A stretch of DNA of 63,668 bases, filler included, from Basidiobolus meristosporus CBS 931.73 (GCA_002104905.1; 4 parts of 4 records of this genome joined end to end with filler, not necessarily neighbours in it), one strand, 5' to 3'; numbered from the whole stretch's first letter, positions 10,343-63,668 are shown. A program made the numbers and translations. The notes: generated from the sequence alone by a model not told the origin.

Positions 10343-10874
10343 CTAGAACTTGGCGAATTGCTTGCTGCCTTGGGTCTTCTTTTGGACCTTGAGGACGTTG
10401 AAGCGGACGGTCTTGGACAAGGGACGGCATTGGCCAACGGTGACCATATCGCCGTTCTCGACACGGAAGCAGGGAGACACGTGAGCGGCAAGGTTCTTGT
10501 GACGCTTCTCGTAACGGTTGTACTTGGGAATGTAGTGAAGGTATTCACGACGGATGATGAGGGTGTTCTTCATCTTGGTGGAGATGACAACACCGGTGAG
10601 AATACGTCCACGAATGCTGACATCACCAGTGAAAGGGCACTTCTTGTCAATGTATTGACCTTCAATGGCCTCCTTGGGGGTCTTGAAGCCAAGACCAACA
10701 TCCTTGTACCAGCGGAGGTTGCGGCTCTTCTTGGCACCGACAACCTTGGCGTTTTGGAAAATACCAACTTGCTTTTGGAAAGCTCTCTCAACCTAAGCAG
10801 TACGCAGAAACATGAGGTTAGCATCCTCATCACATACGTAACTTCCACTTGCAACTTACTTGCTCAGCAGACAT
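10343..10874 (-). CDS. RPS11: 40S ribosomal protein S11 (uS17)
   Basis: Exon 1 MSAEQ at 10874-10860, intron 10859-10793, exon 2 VERAFQKQ...[17 protein letters not shown]...[17 protein letters not shown]...FAKF*. Confidence 0.96.
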
Positions 10875-11267
10875 GATTAAAAATTAATGGAAAAACGCTT
10901 CCGCTAAAGAGAAAAAAGAAGGAACTCTACAAGAAAAATGCGGTATTTTGTTACCCTGCCGAACCCGAATCCCTCTTGGGAAAATTTTCTTCAGATACCC
11001 AGGGCTTGGAGGCTTGCCGATGATTGGCTGAAATCCTGGAATTTACATCAAGTCCATTTTTTTCTTTTTTGCTACGATCAAGCAGAGAGCAGTTGGCGTG
11101 ATGGTCTCGCCTAAAGGCTGGCGATGAAGTAAAAAAAAATCATTCAATTTTGATGTTGATTTTGGGGACGAGTAATCGTCTGTCATAAAATATCAAGTCC
11201 ATGCTGAGAAGAGTTCCCCCTCTTACTTCGTTATCCATCGGCTGACTTTGTATCCATTCATCCAAAG
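10875..11267. promoter_or_regulatory. Bidirectional promoter region between RPS11 and RPL35
   Basis: About 390 bp between two head-to-head ribosomal-protein ATGs; contains poly-A/T tracts and AAAATTTT. Confidence 0.7.
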
Positions 11268-11767
11268 ATGGTTAGTTTTCATGCTACACATTTACTGCCA
11301 CACACACAGAAGCTGACGACATTTCATTAGGCTAAAGTCAAGGCTCACGAACTCCGCAACAAGTCCAAGGACGAACTCAAGAAAGAACTTGACGAGCTCA
11401 AGCAAGAACTTTCTTCCTTGAGAGTTCAAAAGGTTGCTGGTGGCGCTGCCTCCAAGTTGACCCGCATGTAAGCCCCTATCTAGCGTATCCTACGTGGCAT
11501 CGATTAGTATATTTATCATTGTATATTAGCAACGCTGTCCGCAAGTCCATTGCTCGTGTTCTTACCGTCATCACTCAAACTGAGCGTCAAAACATCCGTC
11601 TTTTGTACAAACAAGAGGGCCGCAAGTACCTTCCCTTGGACCTTCGTCACAAGAAGACCCGTGCTATTCGTCGCCGTTTGACCAAGTTCGAGAGCACCCG
11701 CAAGACTGTCAAGCAACAAAAGAAGGATATCCACTTCCCTCAACGCAAGTTCGCCGTCAAGGCCTAA
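11268..11767 (+). CDS. RPL35: 60S ribosomal protein L35 (uL29)
   Basis: ATG at 11268, introns 11271-11330 and 11468-11529. Reads [34 protein letters not shown]...[20 protein letters not shown]...PQRKFAVKA*. Confidence 0.96.
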
Positions 11768-11989
11768 GTTTTCTGCCTCGTACGATGATCACCACTTGAC
11801 GCGATTCTTCGTTTGATTGGGAATTTGTATGTTGGCAAATGCCTTTGTCTTAGCACGAAAATAAACCGTATTAGTAGACTTGTTCAAGTGAATATTCAAT
11901 TCTTTCGTAGACTTCTATTTATTATTGGTGAACAGATGCGTGGGGATAAGTGTGCTATGTATGGTTATGTTGTTGGTAGCCGCAGATTC

Positions 11990-12467
11990 TCACCTATCCG
12001 GCTGGTCTTTCTCGTAGGAAACGAAGACATCCCACAGGTAGTCGAAGTCTTGGGCGTATCCACCAAGGGTATCCAGCACCCGAATACCGCCAATCCTTTG
12101 GAGACCTGGGGCAAGTGGGACGAAGTCGAGGGAGAGATCCACCGAGTCATTTGCTGGGACGTCACCTAGATATTTACTCGAATGGCCGGTGATGAGGATC
12201 GATCCCATCTTCGCCTTGTTAGTAGTTAGGTTGACATGCATGGGGGACGATGTACGATTGCTAAGTCTGCATCGGATCCGGAACGGCTCCTCCAAGAAGA
12301 TATTCAGTGGTGATTCGATTACATTCAACTCGACCTTCTCGAGCGTGGGTGGTTTACGCATGAGCGGGCTAGTCTGGAGTCGTCCGAATTCGCCCAGTAC
12401 TGAGCGCCACACAATATCGAGTTTCCCTAGAACGTTGTGGTGCGAGCAGTAATGTCATTCAGCGACT
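11990..12467 (-). CDS. TRAPPC13: TRAPP complex subunit 13-like protein, 3' part (cut by segment edge)
   Basis: LGKLDIVWRSVLGEFGRLQTSPL and PLAPGLQRIGGIRVLD match the TRAPPC13 C-terminal region. A 1-nt frameshift near 12435 lies at the contig edge and may be a sequence error. Confidence 0.8.
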
Positions 12468-12567
12468 NNNNNNNNNNNNNNNNNNNNNNNNNNNNNNNNN
12501 NNNNNNNNNNNTTAATTAATTAANNNNNNNNNNNNNNNNNNNNNNNNNNNNNNNNNNNNNNNNNNNN
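12468..12567. other. Artificial linker (N run with TTAATTAATTAA)
   Basis: 100-nt spacer with a six-frame stop core; identical at all three gaps. Confidence 0.97.
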
Positions 12568-12899
12568 AGAGGATCAGTATTTGAAACTCTGTAGAAGTAA
12601 TACAGCTGCAACACTAAGTAAGGAGGGTTTCTTAACATTCAGGAGCATTCTGTAACAGTTTCAGGGTTAGTACAAAATGTTTGATAAAAAGCATTAATTT
12701 GATTGTCACTATATGGGAATAACCAAAGGATCATAGACATGAAGAAACTGGTAAAATTGGGGCAGCAAATAAGTCCTACAGTGGCCAATACTAGTCTAAA
12801 ATTGTAAAGTAAGTCTTTAGCTGCTGAATGATACCAAATAGTCCAATATTTTGACATGGTCAAATATTACTTATGTGGCAAAACCCTATGAAAAATAAT

Positions 12900-15809
12900 T
12901 TGGTCCCACAGGTGGATCCAATCCAGATCATCCATCAAAATCCCATTTAGAGGCCATCATAATAACAGCAGCTTGGAATTAGTGACCCTCCTGATGATCT
13001 TATAACAAGATCATGACAGTGTTTTGCAAATTTTACAGCCAAATAAAGGGATAAAGCTTGACAATTTTTGATTGGTGCTGTGACAATATTTGCATGGTAA
13101 GGTTGCAGTCTTTCAGTGCTCTATTACTATTTTAAGTGGATCCAGACAGCCAGGACTTCCAATTGCCTTATACGGCAAGAAACTTGATGGTATTTTGATG
13201 GCCTCACAGCAAGACTCTAATGGCATTTTTTTGGCAGTATGACAGCCTACCGCTGGTTCTGTATAATGCTACCATACCAATTTACCAAATGGTATTTCCT
13301 TTTTCTACCTCCCCTTATGCAAATCATGTATATCACTGTAGAATCACCTTTCTTTATTTGCTTACCCACTACTACCTTGGGTATTCCACATATAGTTTGA
13401 ATCAAAAAAAACTATGGCCTCCAACTTACTAACCTCTACAAACATGCACACCTGCTGCAATTGACATACTACTATCACCTCAACTTTATAGCTTTTTAGT
13501 GTGGTACTTGCAGAGTTGCCATATATCTTGTACTGCTGGTAGCATATACATCTTGCAAAGATATGCTTGGTTGTTGCCACTTCTGCCATGAATACCTCCT
13601 GAATATTGGCAAGAACTTCTTGGTATTTAGCCAATATATTCCTTCACCCTACTGGATTCTAATCCCCCTTATAGGTGCACTCTGGCTTTTGTGTGTGTGA
13701 ATTCTGTATTGAATGGTGTAGAAGTTGGCTTGTGACCACAAGAAATCCGGCATATCTTGGTGGAGTTTTCCCAATAAAAATTAGTTGCTTGTTGCACCCA
13801 ACCCAACTTTGCATTACTTAACTGATTACCCATGCATTGGGGCAGCCTAGCTTCTTAATGCCATAGTCATAGGTGTCTCCATGTGTACATTTGTTCTCTG
13901 TATTCTTCAATTCTTTCTGGCTGTCCTCCATGTGCCAACTCATCACATCCATGACAGACTAGAAGGTAATATTCTTGATGTGATTGGGATATGGTAGTTC
14001 CTGCAACTTGACTTGTCTTCCTATCTCCCCATGCATCTGCTCCATAGGAAACTCCCAAAAGGTGAAGCAAGGCCCAATATTCTCCACACACCATGCAAGA
14101 TGGAGTAGAGAATGGATACAGTAGCGGCAGGGATCTATGCTTTCAGCTTTATGTTTGTGGTATGGCTGCTCAAATCCCGTCACAAACTCCTCACACAACA
14201 GCTGTAGATGCGTCAAGTTGGCATTGGTGATCCGCTTCTGGATAAATATTCCTACAATGTCCACATATGACTCCCAATGCTTCCTATATACTCTTGGTAG
14301 GAATGGCTTCAGAACACCACTTGAATAAATAGATATCCAGCTCATCCAGTCTTTGCATTTGTATTGTCACATATGCATATGAATATTATTTGGAGCCTGT
14401 GAGTAGTACTGAGGGTAGTGGATACTCTGCAATATCTTGCCAATTTTTCAAATTTCTCCAGTATCTCAAAGGGCTCATTTAGCTTGAAATGCCTCATGTA
14501 CAACTTGATCATCAGTATAGGGATATTGTTGAAATTCAAATGCATTGCTCCCAGTGAAAAGGTTTTGCTCCAATAGATACTCTCTATCTTAAGTATCTCT
14601 GGTTTCCAATTGATTCCATATTCTGGCTAATAGCATATAGCTTGCCTACTTTGATGCAATTGCATGCTTTCTTATGTACATTCTCTTGCTGGAAAGATGA
14701 TGTTCTTAGTGCTGGTGTTTGGGTAATAATAATATGTGTGAGTCAAGAAGTAAATCCCCTGGATCTCACACATTTGACAGCAATACCATCTATTTTGCCC
14801 AGATAACCTGCTATCTTGTTGATGGCTTGGGTATCTCCAACGCAGATAATAATATGTGCTTTTACATGATGGCCACTTACAGTTATCCTGCTGGAAAGCA
14901 TACAAAATTCATCCAGCTATGGATACAGGTATCTATCCAGGTTGGATGGTGATTTAGGCCCAGATGCCAGTGAGACTACCATCAGATTATTGCTCTGATA
15001 CTATAAGATGGGCGGCACATTCAGATTGATGAGAATCAGGAGTGAGAACAATGTCTTCCCGCAATGGTGGTGGATTCCTGACAATTTGGACATGTTGCAA
15101 TGGTAGCATTTTTGGATGTGAATGCCATGCAACTGTTAGCACATGCTGGAATCAGGACAGTCTCTGGATCATATGTTGCCAGCCACATGATGGTTATCCA
15201 CTTGTACCATGTACATGGTATGTTGCATCCTGGCATGATTTTGGCCAGAAGTAGTAATAAATCTTCAAAGTCCCTATGACTGATATTAGTGGAAATGTGC
15301 CACTTCTCTAGCCACAACATTACATCATTCACCAGTAGATGGATTACTGGGCTCACTTGGCTCCATAAAGTATCCGTGGCTTTTGTTTCAATGTGTGTTG
15401 TCTCATTGCATATAGGGATTTGACCAAGCTCATACATGGTACTGTTGTTAAGGGAGATAGGCTCAAAATCCATCAGTGAGCCTTCTTTGTCAGAGCTATC
15501 ACTCTGTGTGGCATATTCAGAAGGCTGAGGTGAGCCTAAGGGCATCACAAACTCACCTGACTCAGTTTGCGCAAGGTGACAAAAACAGCCAGGTGCCAAT
15601 GTAGAAGTATCAGCTGACTGGCAAGATAATGTTGGTACAGTAGTGACCAATGAATGGTCAAATATGACTTGGGTGGCAAAACACTGGCCGTGATCCTTGT
15701 AATACTTCCTATGCTGTCTGTGTGCTTTATGGCTGAACAGCTTGCCACAATAGCCACATTGTCTTTTTTCTCTTTTCTTACGGCATTGAGTCAAAGTAGT
15801 CTTGTCCAT
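12900..15809 (-). mobile_element. Degenerate CACTA/EnSpm-like (Tnp2-type) transposase gene
   Basis: Fragments include an N-terminal CxxC...H...H, ISHRDFEDLLLLL...NIP, CANSCMAF...CPNCQ and HSLLHLAWCVENIGPCFTFWEFPMEQMHG. Many stops and frameshifts; termini not found. Confidence 0.7.
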
Positions 15810-15899
15810 GGGGCAACAAGTTTGAGCTTCAACAATGTAACACTATTATATCACTTTTTTGTCAATATTCAGGTGAGCTTAAGACAGTCTTGCATTTGA

Positions 15900-17290
15900 G
15901 ACATCACACCTACATGAATGTAAGACTCAATGATGACCCGCCATAGTAAGCATATAAATAAAGTTGTGGCACCACATACACACGTATATGCAACACTATT
16001 TCCCCTTTGGTTTGACTCACCTCCATATATATGCCACCAAAAAATAAAGTAATGTTGTCTGGTTCTCAACCAAGCCCCACTGCTGACAGCAACAGATGAA
16101 TGGTTTGACAACAGCTTGCTTTGACATTCAGTGCAACAAGCAGGGCTATATCCAAAAAAGGCCGTGTGGACAGTGTGCCCATTGAAGGTAATAATGCGGA
16201 CTCTTCAGGCTCTCAGTCAAGTAGGCAATTGAGAACCACTGCAGAACCACAAGCTGACCCTTATGCTCAGGCAGATGAGAATGTAGCAAACACAGTATCC
16301 TCAGTTGAAGATCGGCAAGTGGTCATGATAACATCACCACCACCCATATTAGCAAGTATGTTGTCAGCTCATACGAAAGCATTAATAAAGCAATTAGGTG
16401 CAGTGGCTGATAGGATAGATGCAATGGCCCAAAGAAGTGAGTAAGTAGTCCAGAAACAGGATGAGCAGATAATACATGTAGAGCAATCAATATCCCAGGT
16501 AGAGAAAGCAGTATATTTGCTGCAAAGAAGGAACTCAAGTAGCTCAATTTCACAGCCAAGAATTGAGCCATTTCCGGATGTAACAGCAGAGGAACACTGT
16601 ACAGTCTTTGAAGCACAACAACAGTGCCCAAAGATAAAGCCAACAGAAAAACCTATCACAGCATGGCAGGGAGACAATGTGGTTATTATACCAAAGCCTT
16701 AAAATCAAAAGACATTGAAGTTCAGTGAAGCCATTGAGTGCCATAATAAACAGTGGGCTAATATACAAGAGGCTGTCAGAAATCAAGCATGCCATCACCT
16801 CAAGGCCATCATACCATGGGACCATCAGGAGCTCAAGGCCAAGCAGAATGCACTTGACTTGCTCCATGAGCATTATCCAGGATTCAAACAGTCAAACAGA
16901 TTTTGGGCCAACATTGGTATGCTGAGAAAGTATCTTTAGAATAGCAGAAACTATCCATGGCAGAAGAACAAGGATGCCATGGCTAAAAACCAGCGGTTTC
17001 CTCAAGAGCCTGTTACAAGCTGGGCCAAAAGCTCCAGGCAAGCATCAGAGAGATGTCAGGCAGCTGGAAGAGTGCCAATTAAGGATAAGCAGGCAGACAT
17101 GAATGCACCAGCACAACATTTATTGGGGAAAAAGCGCATTACTGCTCAAGAAGCACCCGGTCAATGTAGCAGTGAAGGACCTGGCATTGATAAAACCAGC
17201 TGCTTTTACAGGAGCCCGTCACAACTACGGTTGAGAGCTCAAAACAAGCTGAAAAGAAATGTCAGGTTGCCAGAAGAGTGCCAGTAAGAG
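15900..17290 (+). pseudogene. Divergent companion ORF of the CACTA-like element (fragmented)
   Basis: ORF pieces 16121-16444, 16517-16702, 16715-16939 and 16979-17287 lie head-to-head with the transposase; the same arrangement recurs at ~22900-24500. Confidence 0.5.
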
Positions 17291-17760
17291 ACAAGCAAGC
17301 CAGAACAGATGTGTTAGAGCAGAATTTATCAAGGAGAAAACATAGTTCTTTACAAGAAGCACTCATACAAAGTAGCAGTGAAAGACCTAGCAGAGATAAA
17401 GGAAAAGGTAAAGTAAAAATGTCTACCCAAGCCTGAGACAGGAAGGCAAGCAAAAAAAACTGCAGTTCTTCCCAATTAACACTGCAAGCTAGGAACAGAC
17501 TGAATCCCATCATAGCCAAGAAGAATTACCAACAAGAAAACAGCTGTTTTCACAAGAGTTGGAAGCATAGCCAGTTGAGCTACACTCTAGCAAGGTAGAT
17601 GAGTTTGCTAAAAATGCAATTGTTTACCACAGCCTCCACAGCCTCCATTGTTGACAGAGTGGAGATCCCACTGACAGACAAGGCTACAATGTCAAGAGCT
17701 CAAAAGACTTTCACAATGCCTTTAGTGGAGTTTTGAAACATTAATAGGCACATTGAGAGG

Positions 17761-18096
17761 TTGCAGCACTTCTTCAAGAGCAGTGCTCAAGAAAACGCAC
17801 TGGTATATAGCAAGGACTTATTGCAAAGACTGGCAGATGAGGAGCTAGACGTTGCAGTGCGGTCTGAAGACCAGGATGTGTGGGAACCCTTGAATGAACA
17901 GTGGCATAAAGCCGTTGGGTTCCCGTCAAAGTTGCGGAACCAGAGCGTTACAGCAGAAATACTTATTCAGTGGTGGATTTTGATGGATTTACTTGTTGAG
18001 TGTGGGGTTCAGCTTAATGTTAGTGTAGGGTATAGTGACTTGTACAGGTCAATACAATTGGCAATCAAGGTACAACTGAAGTTTCAATGGAAATAA
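17761..18096 (+). pseudogene. Uncharacterised TE-associated ORF, copy 1
   Basis: LLQRLADEELDVAVRSEDQDVWE...LLVECGVQLNVSVGYSDLY is homologous to sequence at ~26170-26430 (+) and 31191-31571 (-). Confidence 0.5.
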
Positions 18097-18701
18097 ATCA
18101 ATTAGTACGCATGAAAAGTAAGAGAAACAGTTGGGTCAGGAAGTAAGGAGCGTGAAAAAGAGGCAATAGCCAATCAATTCACACAAACTTAGGAGGCAAT
18201 AGAGTGTCTGGGATCAGAAAGTGAGTAAATTGGCAGGGAACCAATCAAAAGCCACTTATACATTGTTGTGATGAAAAATTTTGATAAAGTTTAGACTTGT
18301 TCCATTGCATAGTGCCAAATGATGCCATAGTGTGCCAGAGAGGTCAAGTGAGCCTATACTTGACCACAGAGTGTGAAACATAGCTCTGCATCTTCATGTA
18401 AAGCAGCCCCTGTGTTTTACCCATTGCGCAGGAGAAAATCCACTTTTTGACCTTTTTTTTTTGGATCAATATAGCTCAGGATGTGTTAGAGCACAGGAGA
18501 GCTGAAGATATGCATCTGGTACTCAATGCCCATGGCACTCTGAATCTAGCTCCTGTAGCTTGTATCATGTCACAAAAATGAATGGCACTTTCTTGGTCCA
18601 CTGGTACTATCTGGCACTTTAAGTGCTTTGTATAGCTCTTACTTTGAGGCTAATATTTAAATATAGTGCCAGATAGTACCAGTGGACCAAGATAGTGCCA
18701 T

Positions 18702-54370: not shown

Positions 54371-54377
54371 AGGCCCA

Positions 54378-55667
54378 TTGAAAGGGGCCACTGCCTTTGG
54401 TACATTGATTGGACAACTACTGTTTGGCTACCTAGGGGATCGTCTTGGAAGAAAGAAGATGTATGGCTCAGAGTTGATTATCATTATTTTTGCTACCATC
54501 TGCTGTGCAATTGCTGGTTCGTGGGCTAAAGGAGTGAACGTGATTGCCATCCTTGGCTTTTGGCGCTTCATTCTCGGAATTGGCATAGGAGGTGACTACC
54601 CAGTGTCGGCAGTAATCACATCAGAGTTTGCCTCAACAAAAAGAAGAGGCATGATGATTGCCGCCGTCTTTGCGTCCCAAGGAACTGGTATTTTGGTCGG
54701 AGCGCTGTTTACTGTGATCATGTTGGCTATCTTCCAAGGGGCCATCCGGGCGGATCAGAACAACTTCGATTATGTTTGGAGACTGATGCTTGCTTTTGGA
54801 TGCGTTCCTGCCATTTTTACCGTGTACTTCCGTTTGACCATGCCCGAATCACCACGCTATACTTTGGAAGTGAATGGAGATCCGGAAAAGGCAGCCGAGG
54901 ACTTGAGAGGAATCATGAATGTCGAAGACAAGGATCGCGTGGAGGCGCATCATCAGATAGCTAAGGTTGAACGCCCACAACTGACCTTCACTGAGCATTT
55001 CGGACAGTGGAAGAATCTCAAGGTGTTGCTAGGTACCTCGTTGTCCTGGTTTTTCCTCGACATTGCCTTCTATGGACTCTCCCTTAACCAGTCATACGTC
55101 CTACAAGCGATCGGATATTCCTCAAAAGGCCTCTCTCCTTACGATGCCATGTGGACTGAGGCCGTTGGAAATCTAATCATCTCATTAATGGGAACTGTCC
55201 CAGGCTACTGGTTCACGGTGTTCCTTATTGAACGCATGGGCCGAATCAAGATCCAGTTGATGGGATTCGCCTTCTTAACCATCATTTTCATCATACTCTC
55301 TGCTGGCTTTTACAAGATTCGGGACACAGCAGTTGCGCTATTCGTCGCATTGTTTACCTTGGCCCAGTTCTTCTTCAATTTCGGCCCAAATACCACCACA
55401 TTTGTCCTTCCATCCGAGGTATTCCCCACTCGCTTCCGTTCCACTGCTCACGGTATCTCGGCTGCTTCCGGAAAGCTTGGAGCCATCATCGCTACTTTCG
55501 GCTTCAATCAATTGGTGGAGATTGGTGGTAAGGATGGAGAGCACGCTTTCCTTCCACAAACCCTCGGAATCTTTGCTGCCATCATGTTCCTTGGATTTCT
55601 ATCAACCTTCTGGGTACCTGAAACCAAGGGCAAATCTTTGGAAGAGATTTCCGGGGAAGATAGCTAG
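54378..55667 (+). CDS. PHO84: High-affinity phosphate:H+ symporter, 5'-truncated by segment edge
   Basis: GDRLGRKKMYG, GIGIGGDYPVSA, WFFLDIAFYG and FFFNFGPNTTTF...EVFPTRFRSTAHGISAASGK. Confidence 0.93.
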   Translation: MKGATAFGTLIGQLLFGYLGDRLGRKKMYGSELIIIIFATICCAIAGSWAKGVNVIAILGFWRFILGIGIGGDYPVSAVITSEFASTKRRGMMIAAVFASQGTGILVGALFTVIMLAIFQGAIRADQNNFDYVWRLMLAFGCVPAIFTVYFRLTMPESPRYTLEVNGDPEKAAEDLRGIMNVEDKDRVEAHHQIAKVERPQLTFTEHFGQWKNLKVLLGTSLSWFFLDIAFYGLSLNQSYVLQAIGYSSKGLSPYDAMWTEAVGNLIISLMGTVPGYWFTVFLIERMGRIKIQLMGFAFLTIIFIILSAGFYKIRDTAVALFVALFTLAQFFFNFGPNTTTFVLPSEVFPTRFRSTAHGISAASGKLGAIIATFGFNQLVEIGGKDGEHAFLPQTLGIFAAIMFLGFLSTFWVPETKGKSLEEISGEDS

Positions 55668-56204
55668 AGCATTAATCACACATGTCAAATAGAATCACCA
55701 CTTAAATATATCATATAATTAATACCATAAGTTGACCATAAAACCATGCACTTCGGATAAATATCATGTTACTCCTATATTTCCTGCTCAGTCATGGGAT
55801 ATTAGTGACAAACTATATCTCAAATATTGCAAGTAACTAGCTGGTTCACTCCACCAGCTAACTGAAATTAAACTAATTCCTCAAGTACACTAGGGTTGGG
55901 GAGTAAAATTATCACCAAAAGTTAAAATATCAACTTCAGTAACTTAAATTAAAGAAGCCAAGTTCTACTGGGATATATATTTATAAGAAAATAAAACATA
56001 ATGTCATTTTTGTAGATATTTTGTAATTTCACAGTACTCATGGGCATAGTTCATGGTTTACAAATCTAAGTTCCTTGTTGCAACTTACTTATGTCAGGGG
56101 GCATACACACTATGATGAAGACATGAATGCTGCTGTAAGGATTCTGGAGATATAGGAAGTCACTGGGACAACAAGTAGGGCCAAGGGGGGGGAAGTGACT
56201 AAGT

Positions 56205-56317
56205 TGGGGGAGGCAAAGTCACTCAAGGTAGGTGAGATCTTTATTGAGCTCAGATAAGCCTGATACAAACAAAGAAGCCATTTGGGAATTAAAAGTTCCC
56301 ATGGTACATACCAAGTT
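56205..56317 (-). mobile_element. Old 5'-truncated family X unit (3' UTR only)
   Basis: Matches 62770-62882 (GTCAC.AAGGTAGGTGA, AAAGAAGCCA, GGGAAT...TTCCC). Confidence 0.75.
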
Positions 56318-56748
56318 GGGTTAGGGGAGGGAAAGTCACCAAGTTGGTGAAATCTTTATTTGAGTCAAGAACTAATATAAGGACAAATAAAGAAGTCAAT
56401 TCAGAGGTCTAGTACCTCTCCAATAAGTAATCTAATTTATGTTTTGTTTCATCTCTAATGTTTATTTCAATAAAGTAAAGCTCATCAGGGTTAAATATAA
56501 AATTCAAGGGTTTTGGGGGAAGTACAAATTGTAGATGTTTCTGATCAATATAATCCAAGACTGGAACCCAGCCTGGGATTAGGTGTAGTAGGAAAGGTGT
56601 GTGGACTTGTAAGTAGCTCTGCCACATAGATCTTAGATGGTCCTGACCCAGTAGTCTTGGTTTCTCAGCTTTATGAAGTTTTGAAGCAAGCTCTGTTACT
56701 ACTGCAGAGCCAACCAGGGTGTGCCAGCAAGAAGATTTTAGGGAGGAG
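56318..56748 (-). mobile_element. 5'-truncated family Y LINE unit (RT C-terminus)
   Basis: CWHTLVGSAVVTELASKL.KAEKPRLL.QDHLRSMWQSYLQVHTPF is homologous to the C-terminus of the Z RT; near-identical to 62169-62600. Confidence 0.85.
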
Positions 56749-56862
56749 TAGGGTTAGGGGGAGGAAAATCATCAAGTGGTGAAATCTTTATTCACTTATG
56801 ACAAGTATCTAAAGAAGCCAAGTTAAACTGAAGTTACTCCTAAAAAGCTAGGTCTGAGAGTT
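56749..56862 (-). mobile_element. Short family W unit (~110 bp, 3' tail only)
   Basis: Matches 63589-63668. Confidence 0.8.
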
Positions 56863-56883
56863 GGGTTAGGGTTAGGGTTAGGG
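56863..56883 (+). repeat. Telomeric repeat tract GGG(TTAGGG)3
   Basis: Longest of the inter-element tracts. Confidence 0.9.
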
Positions 56884-56940
56884 GGGAGACAGTCACCAAC
56901 AGGTGAAATCTTTATTTCAGTTGAAACAAAGAAGCCAGCA

Positions 56941-58725
56941 CTACTGTTGTAGCTTTGATACAAGAGTGTGTAGCTGAGGGGAATTTGTAGGTAAGTTAAT
57001 AAGAAGTGATGATAGTTCTTCAGTGCTCAAGACACTGTTCAGTGGGAAGGGGGGTAGCAAGAGAGGTAAGAATGACTTGTGAACAACATTAATGAGGGGA
57101 ATGTGATAAGGATTGATATTCATCATAAAGGGAGTGTGCTGCTGCAGATATTGCTGCCAAAGGTCTGTCAAGTACTTCAGGTAGGCCAGCTTGGGTTTTT
57201 CTGACTGCTGAATATAGTGAGCAAACTTCTTGACTTCAGGATCTCCAAGTATAGTTCTCCAGCAGGAGTCAGGCATTGTGTGGTGTGTTCTCTTCCAGGC
57301 CTTAATCAGTGGGTTGTTGCAGTTGTGAAGTCTGAGGTATAATCTGGTTCTAAGGTAGAGAAGTCTGATCTTATAGGGCATAAACCCAAAAGCACCAAGA
57401 ATAGCATGTCTGTAGGGGCATTCAGGCAAATGAGGCACCAAGGAGGTAATGCACCATACTGCAAACTTGTCAAGCTTAGTGCAGTCTCTAGATGTAAGAG
57501 AGAGAAGTGGTAAGCCAAATTCCAGGACAGGGAAGACAAACTGCTTGAGTAGAAGGAGGCAGCTGGGAGCTGAAGTTGTAGGAGGAGTAACAGCCAGTAG
57601 CTTGTGGAGTGCCTGTCTTGCCAGGATAATTCTCTTCTTCAGGTGTGCTCCAGAGTCTATTCCAGTAGGAAGGAAAGGAAAGCCAAGATATGTAGCAGAA
57701 ACCTGAGCAGGTAGAGTGGAGTTCTCCAAGTTGATGGGAGAGCCCAAAGGTACTGTCTTTGCAATGGAAAGCTGGAGATTATTCTTCTGCAGATACTGGT
57801 GGATGGTCTGGGAGTCTTGTTGCACATTGGAGGAGGATATTCTGATGTCATCAGCAAAGAGAGTAACCAGGCAGTCAGCTGAGAGTCTTGGGAAATCATT
57901 CAGGAAGATGGCAAACAGTATAGGACCAAGCACAGAGCCTTGAACCACTCCATTAGGAACTGAGAACACAGCTGATTGCTCACTTGGGTGCAGAATTCTT
58001 GCTTGTGGATCCAGAAACAGAGACCTGACAAGGAGGGTGAGAGAGGTACTGGAGAAGCATTGCAACTTGGACCAAAGCAGATTTCTGTCAACTGAATCAA
58101 AGGCCTTAGTAATATCAAACAGAACAGAGGGATACTTGCACTGGAGAGAGTGATCTTGGCTAAGTATGACTGCATATTCCAAGGAGAGGCCAGGAACAAA
58201 GCCAAACTGTGCAGGATGAAACTTGAGGGAGTCAGAGTAGAGCTCCTGAGCAAGCAGAAGCTCAAACACCTTTCTGCAGGTGGGCAGCAGAGATATTGGC
58301 CTGTAGGAGCTAGGATCCAGGTGCTTTCCTTTACCCTTGTACAGTGGCAGAACATTTGCAAAGGACCATTCCTCAGGAGTAGAAAGCTGGGCTGAGCATT
58401 GCTGAAACAGTGGAAGCAGAAGTGCAGACATGGCCTTGGTAGTAGTCTTCAGAAGCTCATAAGAGATTGTGTCCACACCTGGAGCAGTAGAGTTAGGAAG
58501 CCTCTTGAGCACATTATGGATTCTCCTTTGATCAAGTGCAAGTGGGATGGGCAGAGTCTTGAAGTCAGGATGAAAGCCAGGAGTTGAGTACTGCTTTGTA
58601 GAGAAGAAGATGTTAGCCAGCTGTTCTGTTGAAGGTAACTTCCTGGAAGAGGGCCTCATTGCCCTGTAGAGTCTTGATACTGTTCTTGTTATAGAGTTGG
58701 AAGATTGCAGAGGCAAAGAACTCAT
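56941..58725 (-). CDS. Non-LTR reverse transcriptase, 594 aa
   Basis: STAPGVDTI, LYKGKG...PSSYRPISLL, QFGF, FDITKAFDSV, GVVQGSVLGPILF, LFADD and TYLG. No RNase H or terminal CCHC seen. Confidence 0.95.
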   Translation of the reverse strand: MSSLPLQSSNSITRTVSRLYRAMRPSSRKLPSTEQLANIFFSTKQYSTPGFHPDFKTLPIPLALDQRRIHNVLKRLPNSTAPGVDTISYELLKTTTKAMSALLLPLFQQCSAQLSTPEEWSFANVLPLYKGKGKHLDPSSYRPISLLPTCRKVFELLLAQELYSDSLKFHPAQFGFVPGLSLEYAVILSQDHSLQCKYPSVLFDITKAFDSVDRNLLWSKLQCFSSTSLTLLVRSLFLDPQARILHPSEQSAVFSVPNGVVQGSVLGPILFAIFLNDFPRLSADCLVTLFADDIRISSSNVQQDSQTIHQYLQKNNLQLSIAKTVPLGSPINLENSTLPAQVSATYLGFPFLPTGIDSGAHLKKRIILARQALHKLLAVTPPTTSAPSCLLLLKQFVFPVLEFGLPLLSLTSRDCTKLDKFAVWCITSLVPHLPECPYRHAILGAFGFMPYKIRLLYLRTRLYLRLHNCNNPLIKAWKRTHHTMPDSCWRTILGDPEVKKFAHYIQQSEKPKLAYLKYLTDLWQQYLQQHTPFMMNINPYHIPLINVVHKSFLPLLLPPFPLNSVLSTEELSSLLINLPTNSPQLHTLVSKLQQ

Positions 58726-58734
58726 AATATGATC

Positions 58735-59694
58735 CTAGAGCTGAGTATGCAGAGTGTGGTGAATTGCCTTGGAGTGGTGTATTGCTGTCAGGAGGAGTTT
58801 CTCTGTTTTTGGGTTAGGGAAACTCAGGTAGCTTTGTTGCAGGGCTGAAACAATGGATTCCCATTTTCTTGAGGTAACAGCAGTAGTCTTACATGGCAGT
58901 GAGAGGGAGGCAGACACCAGAATCAGATGCTTCACAAAGAGCCAGGCATAGTTGAGATCATCTGGCAGAGAAAGTAGCAAACTGGCAAGCTTCAAGTAGT
59001 TCCCAAAGTCTTTCTTCTGATTCTTGGTAGCTTTGTGGGTGAGCACAGTAAGTTTTGGCAGCTTCTTCTTCACAACTGGTTGCTTAGAAAGGGACCAGGC
59101 TGGGTGGTCAGAGGCTCTGAAGGATCCTAGCTCAGCTCCAGAGAATTGCTTAACTTCATTCACAAAGTAGAGGGCAGCAGCAGAAGGGCAGATCCAGTCA
59201 ACACATCTTTTCTCAGATTGAGCACCTAGTGCTAGCAGGTGGCTTTCTCTCAGGAAGTTCAGTAGGAATGTAAACCTTGGCTTCATTCTTGCAGTCAGAG
59301 TAGTCTTGTTCGCAGGATGGGGAATGTTGAGATCTCCAAGCAAGATAACAGGTGTTGATATAGATTGTTGGTATTGCTGAACCTTCTGACATATAACTTG
59401 CACTTCTTGAAGGGCAAGACTTGGAGGCAGATAGCAGAGCACCAGACTGATAGTTGGCAACTGGAGAGCAGCACAGTAAGGGGAGTAAAGAGGAACACAG
59501 AGCTGAGGAGTATTGATGGTAGAAGAGATGAAGCAGATAGAGGAGGTATTCTTTGTTCTAGGAGTAGAAAAGCAATATAGATTAGTCAAAAGTATAGAGG
59601 GTAGCTGGACATCAATCAAACACAGGAGGGAAAATCTTGAAAGAAGTCTCTCTAGAGTTGGTCTTGATGGCTGTATGCTGTTGCAGTTAAGCAA
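58735..59694 (-). CDS. Apurinic-like (APE/EEP) endonuclease ORF, no initiating ATG
   Basis: LNCNS, CYLPP, ILLGDLN, VDWI and SDH motifs in the APE order. Confidence 0.85.
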   Translation of the reverse strand: MLNCNSIQPSRPTLERLLSRFSLLCLIDVQLPSILLTNLYCFSTPRTKNTSSICFISSTINTPQLCVPLYSPYCAALQLPTISLVLCYLPPSLALQEVQVICQKVQQYQQSISTPVILLGDLNIPHPANKTTLTARMKPRFTFLLNFLRESHLLALGAQSEKRCVDWICPSAAALYFVNEVKQFSGAELGSFRASDHPAWSLSKQPVVKKKLPKLTVLTHKATKNQKKDFGNYLKLASLLLSLPDDLNYAWLFVKHLILVSASLSLPCKTTAVTSRKWESIVSALQQSYLSFPNPKTEKLLLTAIHHSKAIHHTLHTQL

Positions 59695-59709
59695 CAGAAC
59701 TTCAGGTAG

Positions 59710-61218
59710 TCAGGCAGAGGTTGTAGCTTCTTCAGAGGCAGCATTGATAATGTGACCTGCAGAGTCCCAGAGCTCTTCAAATGGTGCATCACTTAAGTCA
59801 GCAAGGAGGGAAATGGCATGATTCTTGAGAAAGTATGCCACATCATAGGAGGGGGCTTGTCTCTTGATGGCAGCAAAGAAAGACAGAATGGCAACATGGG
59901 CTGGAGGCTTGTTGAACAGTAGAGAGTCAGAGGATTCAGATTCTTCAGGCACTATCTTGAAGTCAGTTTTCAGCCAGTTAAGGTTCTTCTCCACAAAGGT
60001 AACAAATGGGTCAGCAATGTTTTGGTCTAGGATAACCTCCAGAATCTTCCCTTTTCTCCAGGCCAGGTTGACAATTCTTGAGAGCTGAATATTGCATGCC
60101 TTGAGTGCTTTCCTGATGTTGGAAATGGGAGTCCAGGGAACTTGCTTCAAGTACACCACAGTCCAGGTAGAAGCTGGTGGTAGGTTTGCTGGGGGCTTGT
60201 AAGTCCTTCTGTGTTGCAATGGAGCTGCAGTAGTCAGATTGGAGTCCACATTCTCAGTAGAAGGTTTTCTTGATGTGTCTTGCTGAATAGTACTGGAGCT
60301 GGATGTGCTGATAATTCTTGCTAGAACCTTGCCTGCATAAGTCTGAGGTATAGCTGAGGTGACTGTAGAGGTGGTGGCAGCTGGTGCAGGTGGAGAGGCA
60401 GAGACTGAAGCAGGAACTGAGGTCACCTGGGAGAAGGCAGTGGAAGCAGGTTTTCTGGGAGGAACAGAGTTCACTATCCAGTTGTTCTGTAAAACACTGG
60501 AGTAGCTTTTCTGTGGATCAGGATCTTGCTCTTGAACAGGAACAGAAGCAGGAGGCTGGGGCTGAGCAGTAGTGGTAAGGCAGTGGCACTCCAAGGAAGC
60601 TTTTTGCAAGGCATCTCTGGCAGTTTTCAGGGCAGTATTGGCTTCATTCTTGAGCTTCTTGCATTGGGCATCCAGTCTCTTGTTTTCAATAGCCAGGGCA
60701 GTATTGGCAGCCTCTAAATCAGCAATTCTCTTCTCAATTGCAAGGAATCTCTGAAGAAATGCATCAGTAGAAGTGCTGGCATCTGGGAGAGCAGTGGCAG
60801 GAATAGAGTCCATTGACAGTGGGCTTCTTGGAGGAAAGGAAAGTGGACTGGCAGATTCAGGCACAAAAGGAGATATCCTGGCAGGAGGAGAAGGAGTATC
60901 CAAGGCAGTAACAGAGGCAATTCTTGTTGGTGAAGCAGCAGCAGGGGAGGCAAGCCTGTTCAGAAACTGGGCAGGAGAGAGTGCTTGAGGAGAGGGAGTC
61001 TTCAGCTTGCCAAGCATGTCTTCCATCAGAGTGATACCAATATTCCTGGTGAATTTGCAGAGAAAAGTAAGCTTCCTGAGTCTGCCAGCTCTTCCATTCC
61101 TTCTGATAGTTCCTTTGTTTCCACAGTTAGGGCAAGAAATCTTCTTGACAGACTTGTCAAAGCAATCAAGAACCTTCCTTTCAGGTGTAGTGGGCTCCTG
61201 TTGAGGTTTTGGTGGCAT
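59710..61218 (-). CDS. LINE ORF1 (Gag-like): N-terminal Zn-ribbon-like motif, coiled coil, Pro/Ser-rich linkers, C-terminal folded domain
   Basis: ATG at 61218. CPNCGNKGTIRRNG...FLCK; heptad segment IEKRIADLEAANTALAIENKRLDAQCKKLKNE. Confidence 0.8.
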   Translation of the reverse strand: MPPKPQQEPTTPERKVLDCFDKSVKKISCPNCGNKGTIRRNGRAGRLRKLTFLCKFTRNIGITLMEDMLGKLKTPSPQALSPAQFLNRLASPAAASPTRIASVTALDTPSPPARISPFVPESASPLSFPPRSPLSMDSIPATALPDASTSTDAFLQRFLAIEKRIADLEAANTALAIENKRLDAQCKKLKNEANTALKTARDALQKASLECHCLTTTAQPQPPASVPVQEQDPDPQKSYSSVLQNNWIVNSVPPRKPASTAFSQVTSVPASVSASPPAPAATTSTVTSAIPQTYAGKVLARIISTSSSSTIQQDTSRKPSTENVDSNLTTAAPLQHRRTYKPPANLPPASTWTVVYLKQVPWTPISNIRKALKACNIQLSRIVNLAWRKGKILEVILDQNIADPFVTFVEKNLNWLKTDFKIVPEESESSDSLLFNKPPAHVAILSFFAAIKRQAPSYDVAYFLKNHAISLLADLSDAPFEELWDSAGHIINAASEEATTSA

Positions 61219-61287
61219 ATCCAGAGTTTCAGCTTCAAATTTCAATTCTTGAGATTTTTGGGTGATTTTTGATGGGCGGGATCAAAA

Positions 61288-61315
61288 TTAGGGTTAGGGT
61301 TGCGCGCTGTGACTG
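61288..61315 (-). promoter_or_regulatory. Putative LINE promoter: CAGTCACA plus (AACCCT)2 telobox
   Basis: TGTGACTG at 61308-61315 and TTAGGGTTAGGGTT at 61288-61301, about 70 nt upstream of the ORF1 ATG, in the only CpG-rich patch of the element. Confidence 0.45.
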
Positions 61316-61475
61316 CTTTTTACGATCGCAAGGTCAGATCCTAGGAAAAAATAAAAATAGTTAGTAAAGGTGATTTAATGGATGGATGGATGGATTCGGA
61401 GTCAGATTCAATCAAAAAATCACATTGTTGACTAATTTAAAGAGGAAAAATAAAATAGTTAGTAAGGTGATTTAA

Positions 61476-62170
61476 TAGGGTTAGGGGGGGAGACAGTCAC
61501 CAACAGGTGAAATCTTTATTTCAGTTGAAACAAAGAAGCCAGCGCTACTGTTGTAGCTTTGATACAAGAGTGTGTAGCTGAGGGGAATTTGTAGGTAAGT
61601 TAATAAGAAGTGATGATAGTTCTTCAGTGCTCAAGACACTGTTGAGTGGGAAGGGGGGTAGCAAGAGAGGTAAGAATGACTTGTGAACAACATTAATGAG
61701 GGGAATGTGATAAGGATTGATACTCATCATAAAGGGAGTGTGCTGCTGCAGATACTGCTGCCAAAGGTCTGTCAAGTACTTCAGGTAGGCCAGCTTGGGT
61801 TTTTCTGACTGCAGAATAAATTCAGCAAACTTCTTGACTTCAGGATCTCCAAGTATAGTTCTCCAGCAGGAGTCAGGCATTGTGTGGTGTGTTCTCTTCC
61901 AGGCCTTAATCAGTGGGTTGTTGCAGTTGTGAAGTCTGAGGTATAATCTGGTTCTAAGGTAGAGAAGTCTGATCTTATAGGGCATAAACCCAAAAGTACC
62001 AAGAATAGCATGTCTGTAGGGGCATTCAGGCAAATGAGGCACCAAGGAGGTAATGCACCATACTGCAAACTTGTCAAGCTTAGTGCAGTCTCTAGAAGTA
62101 AGAGAGAGAAGTGGTAAGCCAAATTCCAGGACAGGGAAGACAAACTGCTTGAGTAGAAGAAGGCAGCTGG
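61476..62170 (-). mobile_element. 5'-truncated family Z copy
   Basis: Near-identical to 56884-57566; truncated at GGCAGCTGGG, which runs directly into TTAGGG. Confidence 0.92.
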
Positions 62171-62755
62171 GTTAGGGGAGGGAAAGTCACCAAGTTGGTG
62201 AAATCTTTATTTGAGTTAAGAACTAATCTAAGTACAAATAAAGAAGCCAATTCAGAGGTCTAGAACCTCTCTAATAAGTAATCTAATTTATGTTTTGTTT
62301 CATCTCTAATGTTTGTTTCAATAAAGTAAAGCTCATCAGGGGTAAATATAAAATTCAGGGGTTTTGGGGGGAGTACAAATTGTAGATGTTTCTGATCAAT
62401 ATAATCCAAGACTGGAACCTAGCCTGGGATTAGGTGCAGTAGGAAAGGTGTATGGACTTGTAAGTAGCTCTGCCACATAGATCTTAGATGGTCCTGAGCC
62501 AGTAGTCTTGGTTTCTCAGCTTTTTGAAGTTTTGAAGCAAGCTCTGTTACTACAGCAGAGCCAACCAGGGTGTGCCAGCAAGAAGATTTCAGGGAGGATT
62601 CAGATTGAAGCCATTGTTGGATGGAGGGGTTATGTGATTTCTGAAGTTTGACTAGGAAGGAAGCACGGAGATAGATCATTCGGATTTGGTATGGGTAGAA
62701 CCCAAAGGCTCCATTAGTTGCATGGATATAGGGAGATACTGGAAGATAAGGTACC
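62169..62755 (-). mobile_element. 5'-truncated family Y copy
   Basis: VPYLPVSPYIHATNGAFGFYPYQIRMIYLRAS aligns with Z VPHLPECPYRHAILGAFGFMPYKIRLLYLRT; TGG changed to TAG at 62419. Confidence 0.88.
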
Positions 62756-63588
62756 TAGGGTTAGGGTTAGGGGGAGGGAAAGTCACCAAGGTAGGTGAAA
62801 TCTTTATTTGATTTCAGACAAGTCTAACTACAAATAAAGAAGCCAGCTGGGAATAGAAGATTCCCAAAGTAAATACTAAGTTGAATATGAATAAATCTAA
62901 GCTAAAGTTAAGGCAGTATCCCAGAGTACACTGGAGTTCAGGTTCATGGGGGAGTGAAGTAGATAAGCTTGAGAGATATAATAATCTTTAAGGAAGTGGG
63001 TAACAGCAGGTGAAGGGGAGTTTTTGATAAGTGAAGTGAATCTTGAGAGCAGAGATTCCTCTAATGAGAAGGTCTTGTAAACTGGAGAATCAGGAAACTC
63101 TTTAAAGGCATGGTCAGTAGGTTCCCAGTAAAGCTGGTCAGAGACATTTTGAGAGAACTCTTTAGCAATACTTTTGTCAAGTACTACCTCCAGAGTGTGA
63201 TGGTTGATAAATCTCATGTTGACAATCTTGGATAAGTTGTAACCTTGTTGCTTGAGATACATCCTATGCTCAGATATAGGAATAAACTCCACATTGGCAA
63301 AGTAGCAGACAGCCCAGTCAGTAGCAGGAGGCAAATCAGAAGTGGCAGGAAACTTTCTTTTGGTCTTGGGAGGAGCAGCAGGATGTCTTGAGGGAGCAGG
63401 AACAGACTTTTTGACAACTTCAGAGTAGGAAGAGTGAGCAGGAGCAGATGATTCTTGGGGAGTCTTAGGGTTAGGCTTTTAGATACTTTATTGTGAATTT
63501 CATATAGTGCTTACTAATACAAAGAGAAAAGTACAATAGGTAGCTATACATGAACATCTGAAAGAATAGCTATTGCTGGCTCTATGAT
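62756..63588 (-). mobile_element. Family X unit: ORF1-like coding region joined directly to the 3' tail (no EN/RT)
   Basis: ORF stops at 62897 and is followed by only ~135 nt of 3' UTR, then the telomeric junction. Confidence 0.8.
62897..63475 (-). CDS. ORF1/Gag-like protein C-terminal part (family X)
   Basis: PPATDWAVCYFANVEFIPISEHRMYLKQQGYNLSKIVNMRF...LEVVLDKSIA aligns with Z ORF1 PPASTWTVVYLKQVPWTPISNIRKALKACNIQLSRIVNLAW...LEVILDQNIA. The frame is open from ~63475 but has no ATG. Confidence 0.75.
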   Translation of the reverse strand, partial: PNPKTPQESSAPAHSSYSEVVKKSVPAPSRHPAAPPKTKRKFPATSDLPPATDWAVCYFANVEFIPISEHRMYLKQQGYNLSKIVNMRFINHHTLEVVLDKSIAKEFSQNVSDQLYWEPTDHAFKEFPDSPVYKTFSLEESLLSRFTSLIKNSPSPAVTHFLKDYYISQAYLLHSPMNLNSSVLWDTALTLA

Positions 63589-63668
63589 GGGTTAGGGGGA
63601 GGAAAGTCACCAAGTGGTGAAATCTTTATTTACTTATGACAAGTATCTAAAGAAGCCAAGTTAATCTG
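63589..63668 (-). mobile_element. Family W 3' tail (runs off the window)
   Basis: Matches 56749-56830. Confidence 0.8.

Follow-up and report, generated by a model that had tools for sequence, protein, structure and literature searches.

A head-to-tail array of LINEs on telomeric repeats

How do retrotransposons of several kinds come to be stacked end to end on telomeric repeats? The question is raised by the right-hand part of a 63,668-nucleotide stretch of DNA (the window) from the fungus Basidiobolus meristosporus CBS 931.73, in which units of retrotransposons without long terminal repeats (non-LTR elements), or long interspersed nuclear elements (LINEs), follow one another with little more than a few letters of TTAGGG between them. 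The retroelement segment that we analysed comprises positions 54371-63668 of the window, with the array itself running from 55892 to the right edge. We consider it likely that the array was built by several Basidiobolus non-LTR families integrating specifically at TTAGGG telomeric repeats, and its structure is best read as the outcome of target-primed reverse transcription off the telomeric G strand.

Unit boundaries were drawn from reading of the sequence, from a repeat finder and from BLAST comparison of the units with each other and with related loci. An earlier note on this DNA had proposed at least nine minus-strand units stacked head to tail without poly(A); ten were found, 10/10 in minus-strand sense and head to tail, their 5' ends lying in the direction in which the G strand reads, the polarity that the note had described. 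Spacers of 0.5-3 GGGTTA units join them (1-3 in the note), and on the plus strand each unit begins with 0.5-3.5 GGGTTA units followed by a G run. Junctions of the GGTTAGGGG type number 13 in the segment compared with 2.4 expected, a count reached in 0/100 shuffles, and GGGTTAGGGTTA occurs three times by comparison with 0 expected. An A-run or poly(A) was sought at all unit 3' ends of the array and none was found. At least five families are represented (Z, X, Y, W and V), plus the degenerate unit U1; these include the four that the note had named (Z, Y, X and W), the addition being V, a separate and distant LINE lineage. The units are as follows, where names beginning with L denote related loci.

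55892-56199, minus strand: U1, the oldest unit, degenerate; a decayed 3' module beside TAGGGTTGGGG is its sole recognisable part (75% match to P0005-type 3' ends)
56200-56316, minus strand: U2, W-like 3' fragment of 117 bp (81% identical to U8, 79% to W copies in L002)
56317-56750, minus strand: U3, 3' fragment of family X, 434 bp, with the C-terminal part of open reading frame (ORF) 2 and the 3' untranslated region (UTR) (96% to U7, 95-96% to B. meristosporus copies)
56751-56862, minus strand: U4, 3' fragment of family Y, 112 bp (95% to U10, 93% to copies in L010)
56863-56880, plus strand: (GGGTTA)3 linker, the longest telomeric tract of the segment (read from the sequence)
56881-61476, minus strand: U5, full-length Z element, 4.6 kb (ORFs, colinearity of the 5' UTR, 98.5% identity to copies in L010)
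61477-62167, minus strand: U6, Z 3' fragment, 691 bp (98-99% identical to U5)
62168-62755, minus strand: U7, X 3' fragment, 588 bp (97-98% to copies in L001 and L002, which extend further upstream)
62756-63468, minus strand: U8, W fragment, 713 bp (98% identical to copies in L002)
63469-63585, minus strand: U9, 3' end of family V, 117 bp, with its own 3' end AATAAAGTATCTAAAAGCC followed by TAACCC (100% identical to the 3' ends of the full-length V copies of L001 and L010)
63586-63668, minus strand: U10, Y 3' end, cut by the right edge of the segment (repeat finder, BLAST)

No protein similarity is left in U1. The truncation point of U6 falls in a GGG common to the element and the telomeric linker, and a complete X-type ORF2 is present in L009 (P0007). 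Copies of Z, X, W, V and Y that are 93-100% identical occur in B. meristosporus contigs.

In the full-length element, GGGTTAGGGTT at 61291-61305 is not an inter-element junction, and the CpG-containing DNA at 61306-61476 is not foreign. Both are colinear with the 5' UTRs of three related families, and unitigs cross 61291-61476 at a depth equal to that of the Z body; the full-length Z is therefore placed at 56881-61476. The same alignment with the 5' UTRs of three other families led us to reject 61306-61476 as a separate mini-unit and as template-switched cDNA of a small host RNA.

The Z element combines an APE-type endonuclease with a LINE-type reverse transcriptase

Z consists of three reading-frame segments in one frame, ORF1, a UGA and ORF2. 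Its parts, including the apurinic/apyrimidinic endonuclease-like (APE) domain and the reverse transcriptase (RT), are arranged as follows.

56881-56940, minus strand: 3' module (folding, consensus structure)
56941-59709, minus strand: ORF2, in which an APE endonuclease (about 58990-59709) is followed by a linker, the RT and a C-terminal region that lacks CCHC (RVT_1 E 1.4e-25, APE fold)
59710-59712, minus strand: UGA between ORF1 and ORF2, in the context GCC UGA CUA (same arrangement in every family examined)
59713-61218, minus strand: ORF1, with N-terminal Cys-rich zinc-ribbon-like motif, coiled coil and C-terminal domain; first ATG 61218-61216 (ORF call, predicted model)
61219-61476, minus strand: 5' UTR; its core is shared between families, and 6 of the 10 CpGs of the array lie in it (alignment A3, CpG positions)

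The RT occupies the C-terminal two thirds of ORF2 and, judged by its matches, is LINE-type: RVT_1 was recognised with E values of 1e-25 to 4e-27 across the tested ORF2s, and the best solved-structure match was human L1 ORF2p (1e-15 versus 2e-4 for R2). The N-terminal 240 residues gave only below-threshold Pfam matches (among them Exo_endo_phos, E 7e-5), and when PDB sequences were searched with the APE domain neither sequence nor profile comparison returned a match; here the fold search alone worked. A model of this region made with AlphaFold (AF2) on six family members (mean predicted confidence, pLDDT, 78) was compared by Foldseek and matched ExoIII/APE1, the TRAS1 endonuclease (1wdu, TM 0.71 by target) and the L1 endonuclease with a probability of 1.0, bearing out the earlier note's assignment of these elements to the APE-type LINEs. 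The canonical catalytic positions of APE (N8, D33, Y94, D127, N129, H132, D172 and S201-D202-H203) are invariant among families that are 39-63% identical. The ratio of non-synonymous to synonymous substitution rates (dN/dS) was 0.12-0.15 for the APE domain and 0.08-0.17 for the RT, with dS near saturation in all pairs except Z-L013. Taken together, the predicted fold, the invariant motifs and a dN/dS as low as that of the RT indicate that the endonuclease is real, of APE type and under purifying selection; it is predicted to cut the telomeric repeat. No PD-(D/E)xK restriction-like endonuclease was found C-terminal to the RT by Pfam, and a search in the Atlas gave APE plus RVT_1 only.

ORF1 is less readily classified. 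Its coiled coil has weak Pfam hints; the C-terminal domain is predicted to fold as beta-alpha-beta-beta-alpha plus three helices (model m6c6947461c66), and because the structural matches of this model are weak (RRM/ferredoxin-like, E 0.05-0.3) an L1-like ORF1p fold is not established. Homologues of ORF1 were found in Basidiobolus-like sources only.

The U5 copy is itself probably dead. Its ORF2 is broken by a TGG>TAG change at 58735-58737, between the APE and RT domains, and this change is private to U5: position 58736 is C in nearly all other genomic copies, which thus read TGG, and relatives carry Trp.

In the 5' UTR a core of the form TTTTTCC..GATC..CGT..AAAAGCAGTC.CA..CATTTTGAT is conserved between the window (61219-61476), L011 (1-121 and 4437-4660) and L005 (1-160), and may be a candidate internal promoter. 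Z alone has AACCCTAACCCT inserted in this core (61291-61305; CCCTAA x2), and Z alone has a 33-nt internal duplication of the 5' UTR (61347-61379 and 61446-61476).

A 3' module common to the Z group abuts TAACCC

All families of the Z group end in a common module: AATAAAGATTTCACC-loop-GGTGA comes first, then a spacer rich in C and T, and last a C-run directly next to TAACCC. RNA folding of the 3' modules gave two hairpins, with z-scores of -3 to -3.7 for most sequences. In Z, hairpin 1 is CUUCUUU.../...AAAUAAAGA and includes AAUAAA, hairpin 2 is UCACC/GGUGA, and a single-stranded C-rich tail follows. In a consensus 3' structure of ten sequences from different families, 5 of the 16 pairs stay paired through two-sided changes, one pair being represented by five pair types. 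An Rfam search of the array found no known RNA, and a pattern for the Z-type 3' module, scanned against metagenomes, had no match.

A census of 34 junctions, from the window and 12 loci, showed telomeric letters after the C-run at all of them (34/34), 3-18 in number with a median of about 8, and poly(A) or an A-run at none. The C-run itself varies from 2 to 9 overall and from 6 to 8 within family Z.

Two LINE lineages and an ORF1-only family share the junction

Distant full-length relatives with 47-80% protein identity were found on 4-8 kb contigs of other samples (L003-L013). Beyond its own members the Z group stands apart: among 1.8 billion representative proteins searched, the next matches had about 30-36% identity, and the nearest-match clusters bear uninformative names, of arthropod, fish and Mucorales hypothetical proteins. 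In a quick maximum-likelihood tree of 101 RT domains, made without named reference RTs, the Z group forms one long-stemmed clade (support 100), V lies in the other half of the tree among unnamed metagenomic sequences, and a poly(A)-tailed LINE from Parasitella (Mucorales; L014) falls in V's half, split from the Z group by well-supported branches.

V encodes an ORF2 of 998 amino acids that overlaps its ORF1 in another frame and carries a C-terminal Cys-His-like motif; no CCHC was found in V ORF1. As its RT is 25% identical to that of the Z group and stands apart in the tree, two deep LINE lineages share the TAACCC junction. V may be an R1/TRAS-like lineage; one of the sequences with which it groups in the tree ends on (CCTAA)n. 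The 5' region of the full-length V element (L010 6383-6823) contains a tandem repeat of about 146-150 bp in 3-4 copies, like the variable-number tandem repeats at the 5' ends of MoTeR and FoTeR and the monomers of L1. Two relatives of V were also seen in other material: one from a JGI metagenome (L015, 4365-4800) ends in (CCCTAA)3 and continues into a tandem repeat of about 30 bp with degenerate CCCTAAC, and one from an SRA run (L016, 4500-4929) ends in (CCTAA)n, the arthropod telomere unit. Judged by these 3' ends, the V lineage could be a clade that targets telomeres and has a wide distribution. A sister-clade contig (L017, TARA) did not reach a recognisable 3' end.

The W unit U8 contains an ORF homologous to ORF1 in the latter's C-terminal half (E 7e-23, with 36% identity over residues 340-496 of Z ORF1). 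Its stop codon (62897-62899) is directly followed by the 3' UTR and the common 3' module, with no ORF2 in U8; other W copies extend upstream of U8 (loose ends at 63466). W is an ORF1-only and presumably non-autonomous lineage analogous to HeT-A and, having ORF1 and no ORF2, would presumably rely on the RT of other elements.

The architecture recurs at other loci

Arrays of the same design occur in B. meristosporus contigs L001, L002 and L010, 0-20 kb from a contig end, with all units co-oriented and 5' ends facing that end; they also occur in contigs from several unrelated samples, with elements that are 65-80% diverged. Contigs of four sequencing runs of one sample were mapped to 57669-63668 and contained more than 200 distinct joints. 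In these a copy of Z, X or W, cut short at any of many points, leads through a few letters into Z, X, W or Y at precisely its 3' start. Depth, as sums over contigs that were not used as copy numbers, was about 7-10x higher over 3' than over 5' parts. Given this number of joints with variable truncation points, the arrays are a genome-wide product of many independent events and no assembly accident.

Unequal recombination also shapes them, since two neighbouring Z units of 499 bp in L001 (12296-13296) are truncated at the same point and have the same junction. A large duplicated block is common to L001 and L010.

Proposed priming by the telomeric G strand and its alternatives

An element that is antisense on the G strand, with its 3' end at TTA plus a G-run, bears the signature of cDNA primed by a G-strand 3'-OH. 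In the mechanism that we propose, an autonomous element would supply an ORF1 protein (zinc-ribbon-like motif, coiled coil and putative RNA-binding domain) and, in frame behind the UGA, ORF2 with its APE and RT domains. The two-hairpin module at the 3' end of the RNA would be the probable handle for the element's own RT; recognition of a 3' hairpin by the RT is established in stringent-type LINEs of other families. Past the hairpins the RNA would present a single-stranded C-run, with or without UAACCC, and a G-strand 3'-OH ending in ...TTA(GGG) would pair with this tail and prime reverse transcription. The 3'-OH would most likely come from a nick by the element's endonuclease, as for TRAS1, or alternatively from a short natural end. 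No poly(A) would be copied and the element would come to lie antisense on the G strand, its 5' end towards the chromosome end and truncated by incomplete copying or end erosion. Repeated rounds, with each copy offering or regenerating a TTAGGG site, would give mixed-family head-to-tail stacks with minimal spacers. We infer that pairing of GGG-3' with the RNA C-run or UAACCC accounts both for the variable C-run and for the missing poly(A) despite AAUAAA; the range of 6-8 in Z would reflect pairing in variable register.

Several observations weigh against this reading. AAUAAA lies about 35 nt upstream of the junction, and the RNA tail may be UAACCC or poly(A). The first catalytic acidic residue of the endonuclease is Asp instead of the usual Glu. 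The tracts between units are short, while insertion into normal telomeres predicts longer ones, and no long terminal TTAGGG tract was seen in loci of which two, the window segment and L002, end inside arrays. Array interiors are where assemblers break. Distal to the array, L001 and L010 each continue with about 6 kb of non-LINE DNA that carries small genes, and the array of L002 is interrupted by about 870 bp of other DNA. Finally, TTAGGG is assumed to be the Basidiobolus telomere repeat by analogy with other fungi.

A first alternative is that no endonuclease is needed, the C-rich RNA tail annealing to the G overhang of a critically short telomere so that the chromosome end itself primes and the array grows only outward, as a backup to telomerase. 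Such terminal addition has been proposed for HeT-A/TART and for the Penelope-like elements Athena and Coprina. Very short tracts throughout are what would be expected if only near-eroded ends were used, the polarity is the one that this route requires, and decay is furthest advanced in the two most proximal units, U1 and U2. The APE domain is, however, under purifying selection as strong as that of the RT, and the non-LINE DNA that interrupts or caps the arrays in L001, L002 and L010 also favours a nick. Divergence, moreover, is not ordered along the array: relative to the genomic majority U6 differs by about 0.1%, the more distal U7 by about 1.4% and the more proximal U5 by about 0.6%, a rough measure over listed positions that is not decisive. 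Conservation of the endonuclease does not exclude end priming, because TART of Drosophila keeps its APE domain though adding to ends. We therefore regard terminal addition as possible, although clearly less probable than integration at a nicked telomeric repeat.

A second alternative concerns the target, in that the arrays might be self-targeting nests that are not truly telomeric, the endonuclease cutting the element-borne TAACCC tail of resident copies so that an array could seed anywhere and grow from within. Many LINEs carry microsatellite tails. The proximal boundaries here join element to unique DNA through only about one repeat, non-LINE DNA flanks the arrays of L001 and L010 at either end, the tracts of 3-18 nt could be target-site duplications, and the Z 5' UTR itself holds CCCTAA x2. 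This account is nevertheless unlikely: the repeat is the exact canonical fungal and vertebrate telomere unit, 5' ends lie towards the nearer contig end in all loci, and the metagenomic V relative continues into a degenerate CCCTAA tandem repeat of a type typical of subtelomeres, while the arthropod unit at the end of the other relative implies that the tail tracks the host telomere.

Still less probable is an origin by recombination, with a few insertions amplified as blocks by unequal crossing-over or break-induced replication among subtelomeres and transposition not ongoing. The paired 499-bp units of L001 and the block that it has in common with L010 are of this kind, but the runs hold more than 200 different combinations of truncation and junction, the same family has different neighbours at each locus, and intact selected ORFs persist among Z copies that are 98-99% identical. 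That assembly joined unrelated repeat fragments can practically be dismissed, for although no single run record is listed as spanning the whole stretch, the same architecture stands in an independent NCBI assembly and in contigs of several unrelated samples with 65-80% diverged elements, and many contigs in the runs bear junctions.

An in-frame UGA and CpG depletion

In every family examined ORF2 lies in the same frame as ORF1, directly behind a UGA: in addition to the window site these are at L003 2112-2114, L004 2669-2671, L009 905-907, L011 1595-1597 and 6702-6704, and L013 1449-1451. The context, GCC/GCA UGA CUN, is conserved, and ORF2 starts without an ATG in Z and several other families. 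The arrangement suggests programmed stop-codon readthrough to an ORF1-ORF2 fusion, which would be unusual for LINEs.

The array (55892-63668) has 10 CpGs compared with 344 expected, an observed/expected ratio (o/e) of 0.03, with 6 of the 10 at 61277-61397 in the Z 5' UTR; TpG is in excess (o/e 1.62). Corresponding CpG values are 0.00 for the intact 4.9-kb L003, 0.06 for L011, 0.26 for V and 0.72 for the adjacent host gene. Base composition thus suggests long-term CpG-directed methylation and deamination pressure on repeats, or evasion of such pressure.

Genes beside the arrays

The left edge of the segment cuts a PHO84-type phosphate:H+ symporter gene, of which the 3' part is present (54378-55667, plus strand; Pfam Sugar_tr E 3.6e-55); its stop codon is 224 bp from the start of the array. 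The product is 96% identical to two phosphate transporters of B. meristosporus CBS 931.73 and 92% to one B. ranarum protein, which places the organism in Basidiobolus (Zoopagomycota), in keeping with the fungal host named in the earlier note. Transporters of this type form a large paralogous family in Basidiobolus, with at least eight B. meristosporus and at least six B. ranarum proteins of 81-96% identity; the copy in the segment lies right beside the array boundary.

Other genes stand proximal to the related arrays. Just proximal to the one in L002 are five tandem genes (10790-18266) for proteins of 181-231 amino acids with a CHAP domain (bacterial-type peptidoglycan amidase), which could be a family gained by horizontal transfer and amplified near the telomere. 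In L001 (17790-23227) and L010 (21314-22651), very large genes of the non-ribosomal peptide synthetase type (Condensation/AMP-binding/PP-binding/Thioesterase), one product being called at 8158 amino acids, are found a few kb from the arrays on their proximal side.

Relation to known telomeric retroelements

Telomere-specific LINEs with an APE domain are known from insects, and the known fungal telomeric retroelements other than those with a restriction-like endonuclease (REL) are Penelope-like. The closest functional analogues of the array elements are TRAS and SART of Bombyx mori. TRAS1 and SART1, of the R1 clade, likewise combine APE and RT and integrate into telomeric repeats in a fixed orientation; the sense strand of TRAS lies on the C-rich strand, as it does here, several families occur beside telomerase-type repeats, and the fold of the TRAS1 endonuclease is the one matched by the predicted Z-group endonuclease. 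The array elements differ in having no poly(A) and in spacers of 0.5-3 repeats rather than long tracts. Whereas R1-clade elements have three CCHC in ORF1 and a C-terminal Cys-His in ORF2, the traits of that clade that we sought in the Z group (poly(A), three ORF1 CCHC knuckles, and a C-terminal Cys-His, including CCHC, in ORF2) were not found. An ORF2 in frame behind a UGA, a fungal host and an RT on its own long branch set the Z group further apart.

Target-specific APE LINEs have so far been known from the Tx1 and R1 clades (Kojima and Jurka, PMC4640811). MoTeR, FoTeR and Cnl1 resemble the array elements in living in a fungus, in 3' junctions that carry telomere-like repeats, in 5' tandem repeats (here in V) and probably in forming arrays at or close to chromosome ends, but they encode a REL endonuclease, by comparison with the APE fold at the N-terminus of ORF2 in the array elements, and cluster with CRE/SLACS/CZAR (PMC12857005). 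Cnl1 was considered as a precedent for an APE LINE and rejected, being placed in the REL-type CRE clade (PMC12857005).

In the arrays of HeT-A, TART and TAHRE of Drosophila, units of several families follow one another head to tail with variable 5' truncation, as here, and turn their 5' ends to the chromosome end, as those here probably do; HeT-A is an ORF1(Gag)-only partner in the position that W would hold in Basidiobolus. Drosophila has no telomerase repeats and has oligo(A) junctions, whereas TTAGGG letters stand at every junction here; a terminal position and an essential role of the arrays would, for Basidiobolus, be conjecture. Athena and Coprina share an RNA 3' end complementary to the G strand, the absence of poly(A) and head-to-tail arrays, here presumably subtelomeric, but have no endonuclease and a Penelope/TERT-like RT, in contrast to the conserved APE domain and the RT nearest to human L1 ORF2p found here.

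A literature search on Basidiobolus telomeric retrotransposons and LINEs found no description of such a system, the fungal telomeric retroelements that it returned being of the REL type; the earlier note's view that the system is undescribed therefore stands for the literature searched. It seems to be a fungal equivalent, so far undescribed, of the LINEs that are specific to telomeres in silkworm and fruit fly, combining traits otherwise met in separate organisms (TRAS-like targeting, an Athena-like tail that pairs with the G strand, and Drosophila-like mixed arrays that include a Gag-only partner) in a fungus that diverged early and retains TTAGGG. The presence of two unrelated LINE lineages in one niche points to convergent capture of the telomere.

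A role of the elements in maintaining chromosome ends is speculation. We entertain, as a tentative and rather doubtful proposal, that these ends are built or maintained jointly by telomerase and a guild of specialised LINEs. At least four families of the Z group would belong to this guild, together with an ORF1-only, helper-dependent partner and a second lineage that was recruited independently, and their RNAs would mimic the telomerase template and extend short or damaged ends. Were this so, Basidiobolus would be a fungal case, with TTAGGG still retained, that is intermediate between ordinary telomeres and those made of retrotransposons in Drosophila. The system is in any case a tractable one in which to study how retroelements and telomerase divide end maintenance, how the RT of a LINE chooses its template through 3' structure and how transposable elements survive under CpG-directed defence; and the arrays mark likely subtelomeres in fragmented Basidiobolus assemblies.

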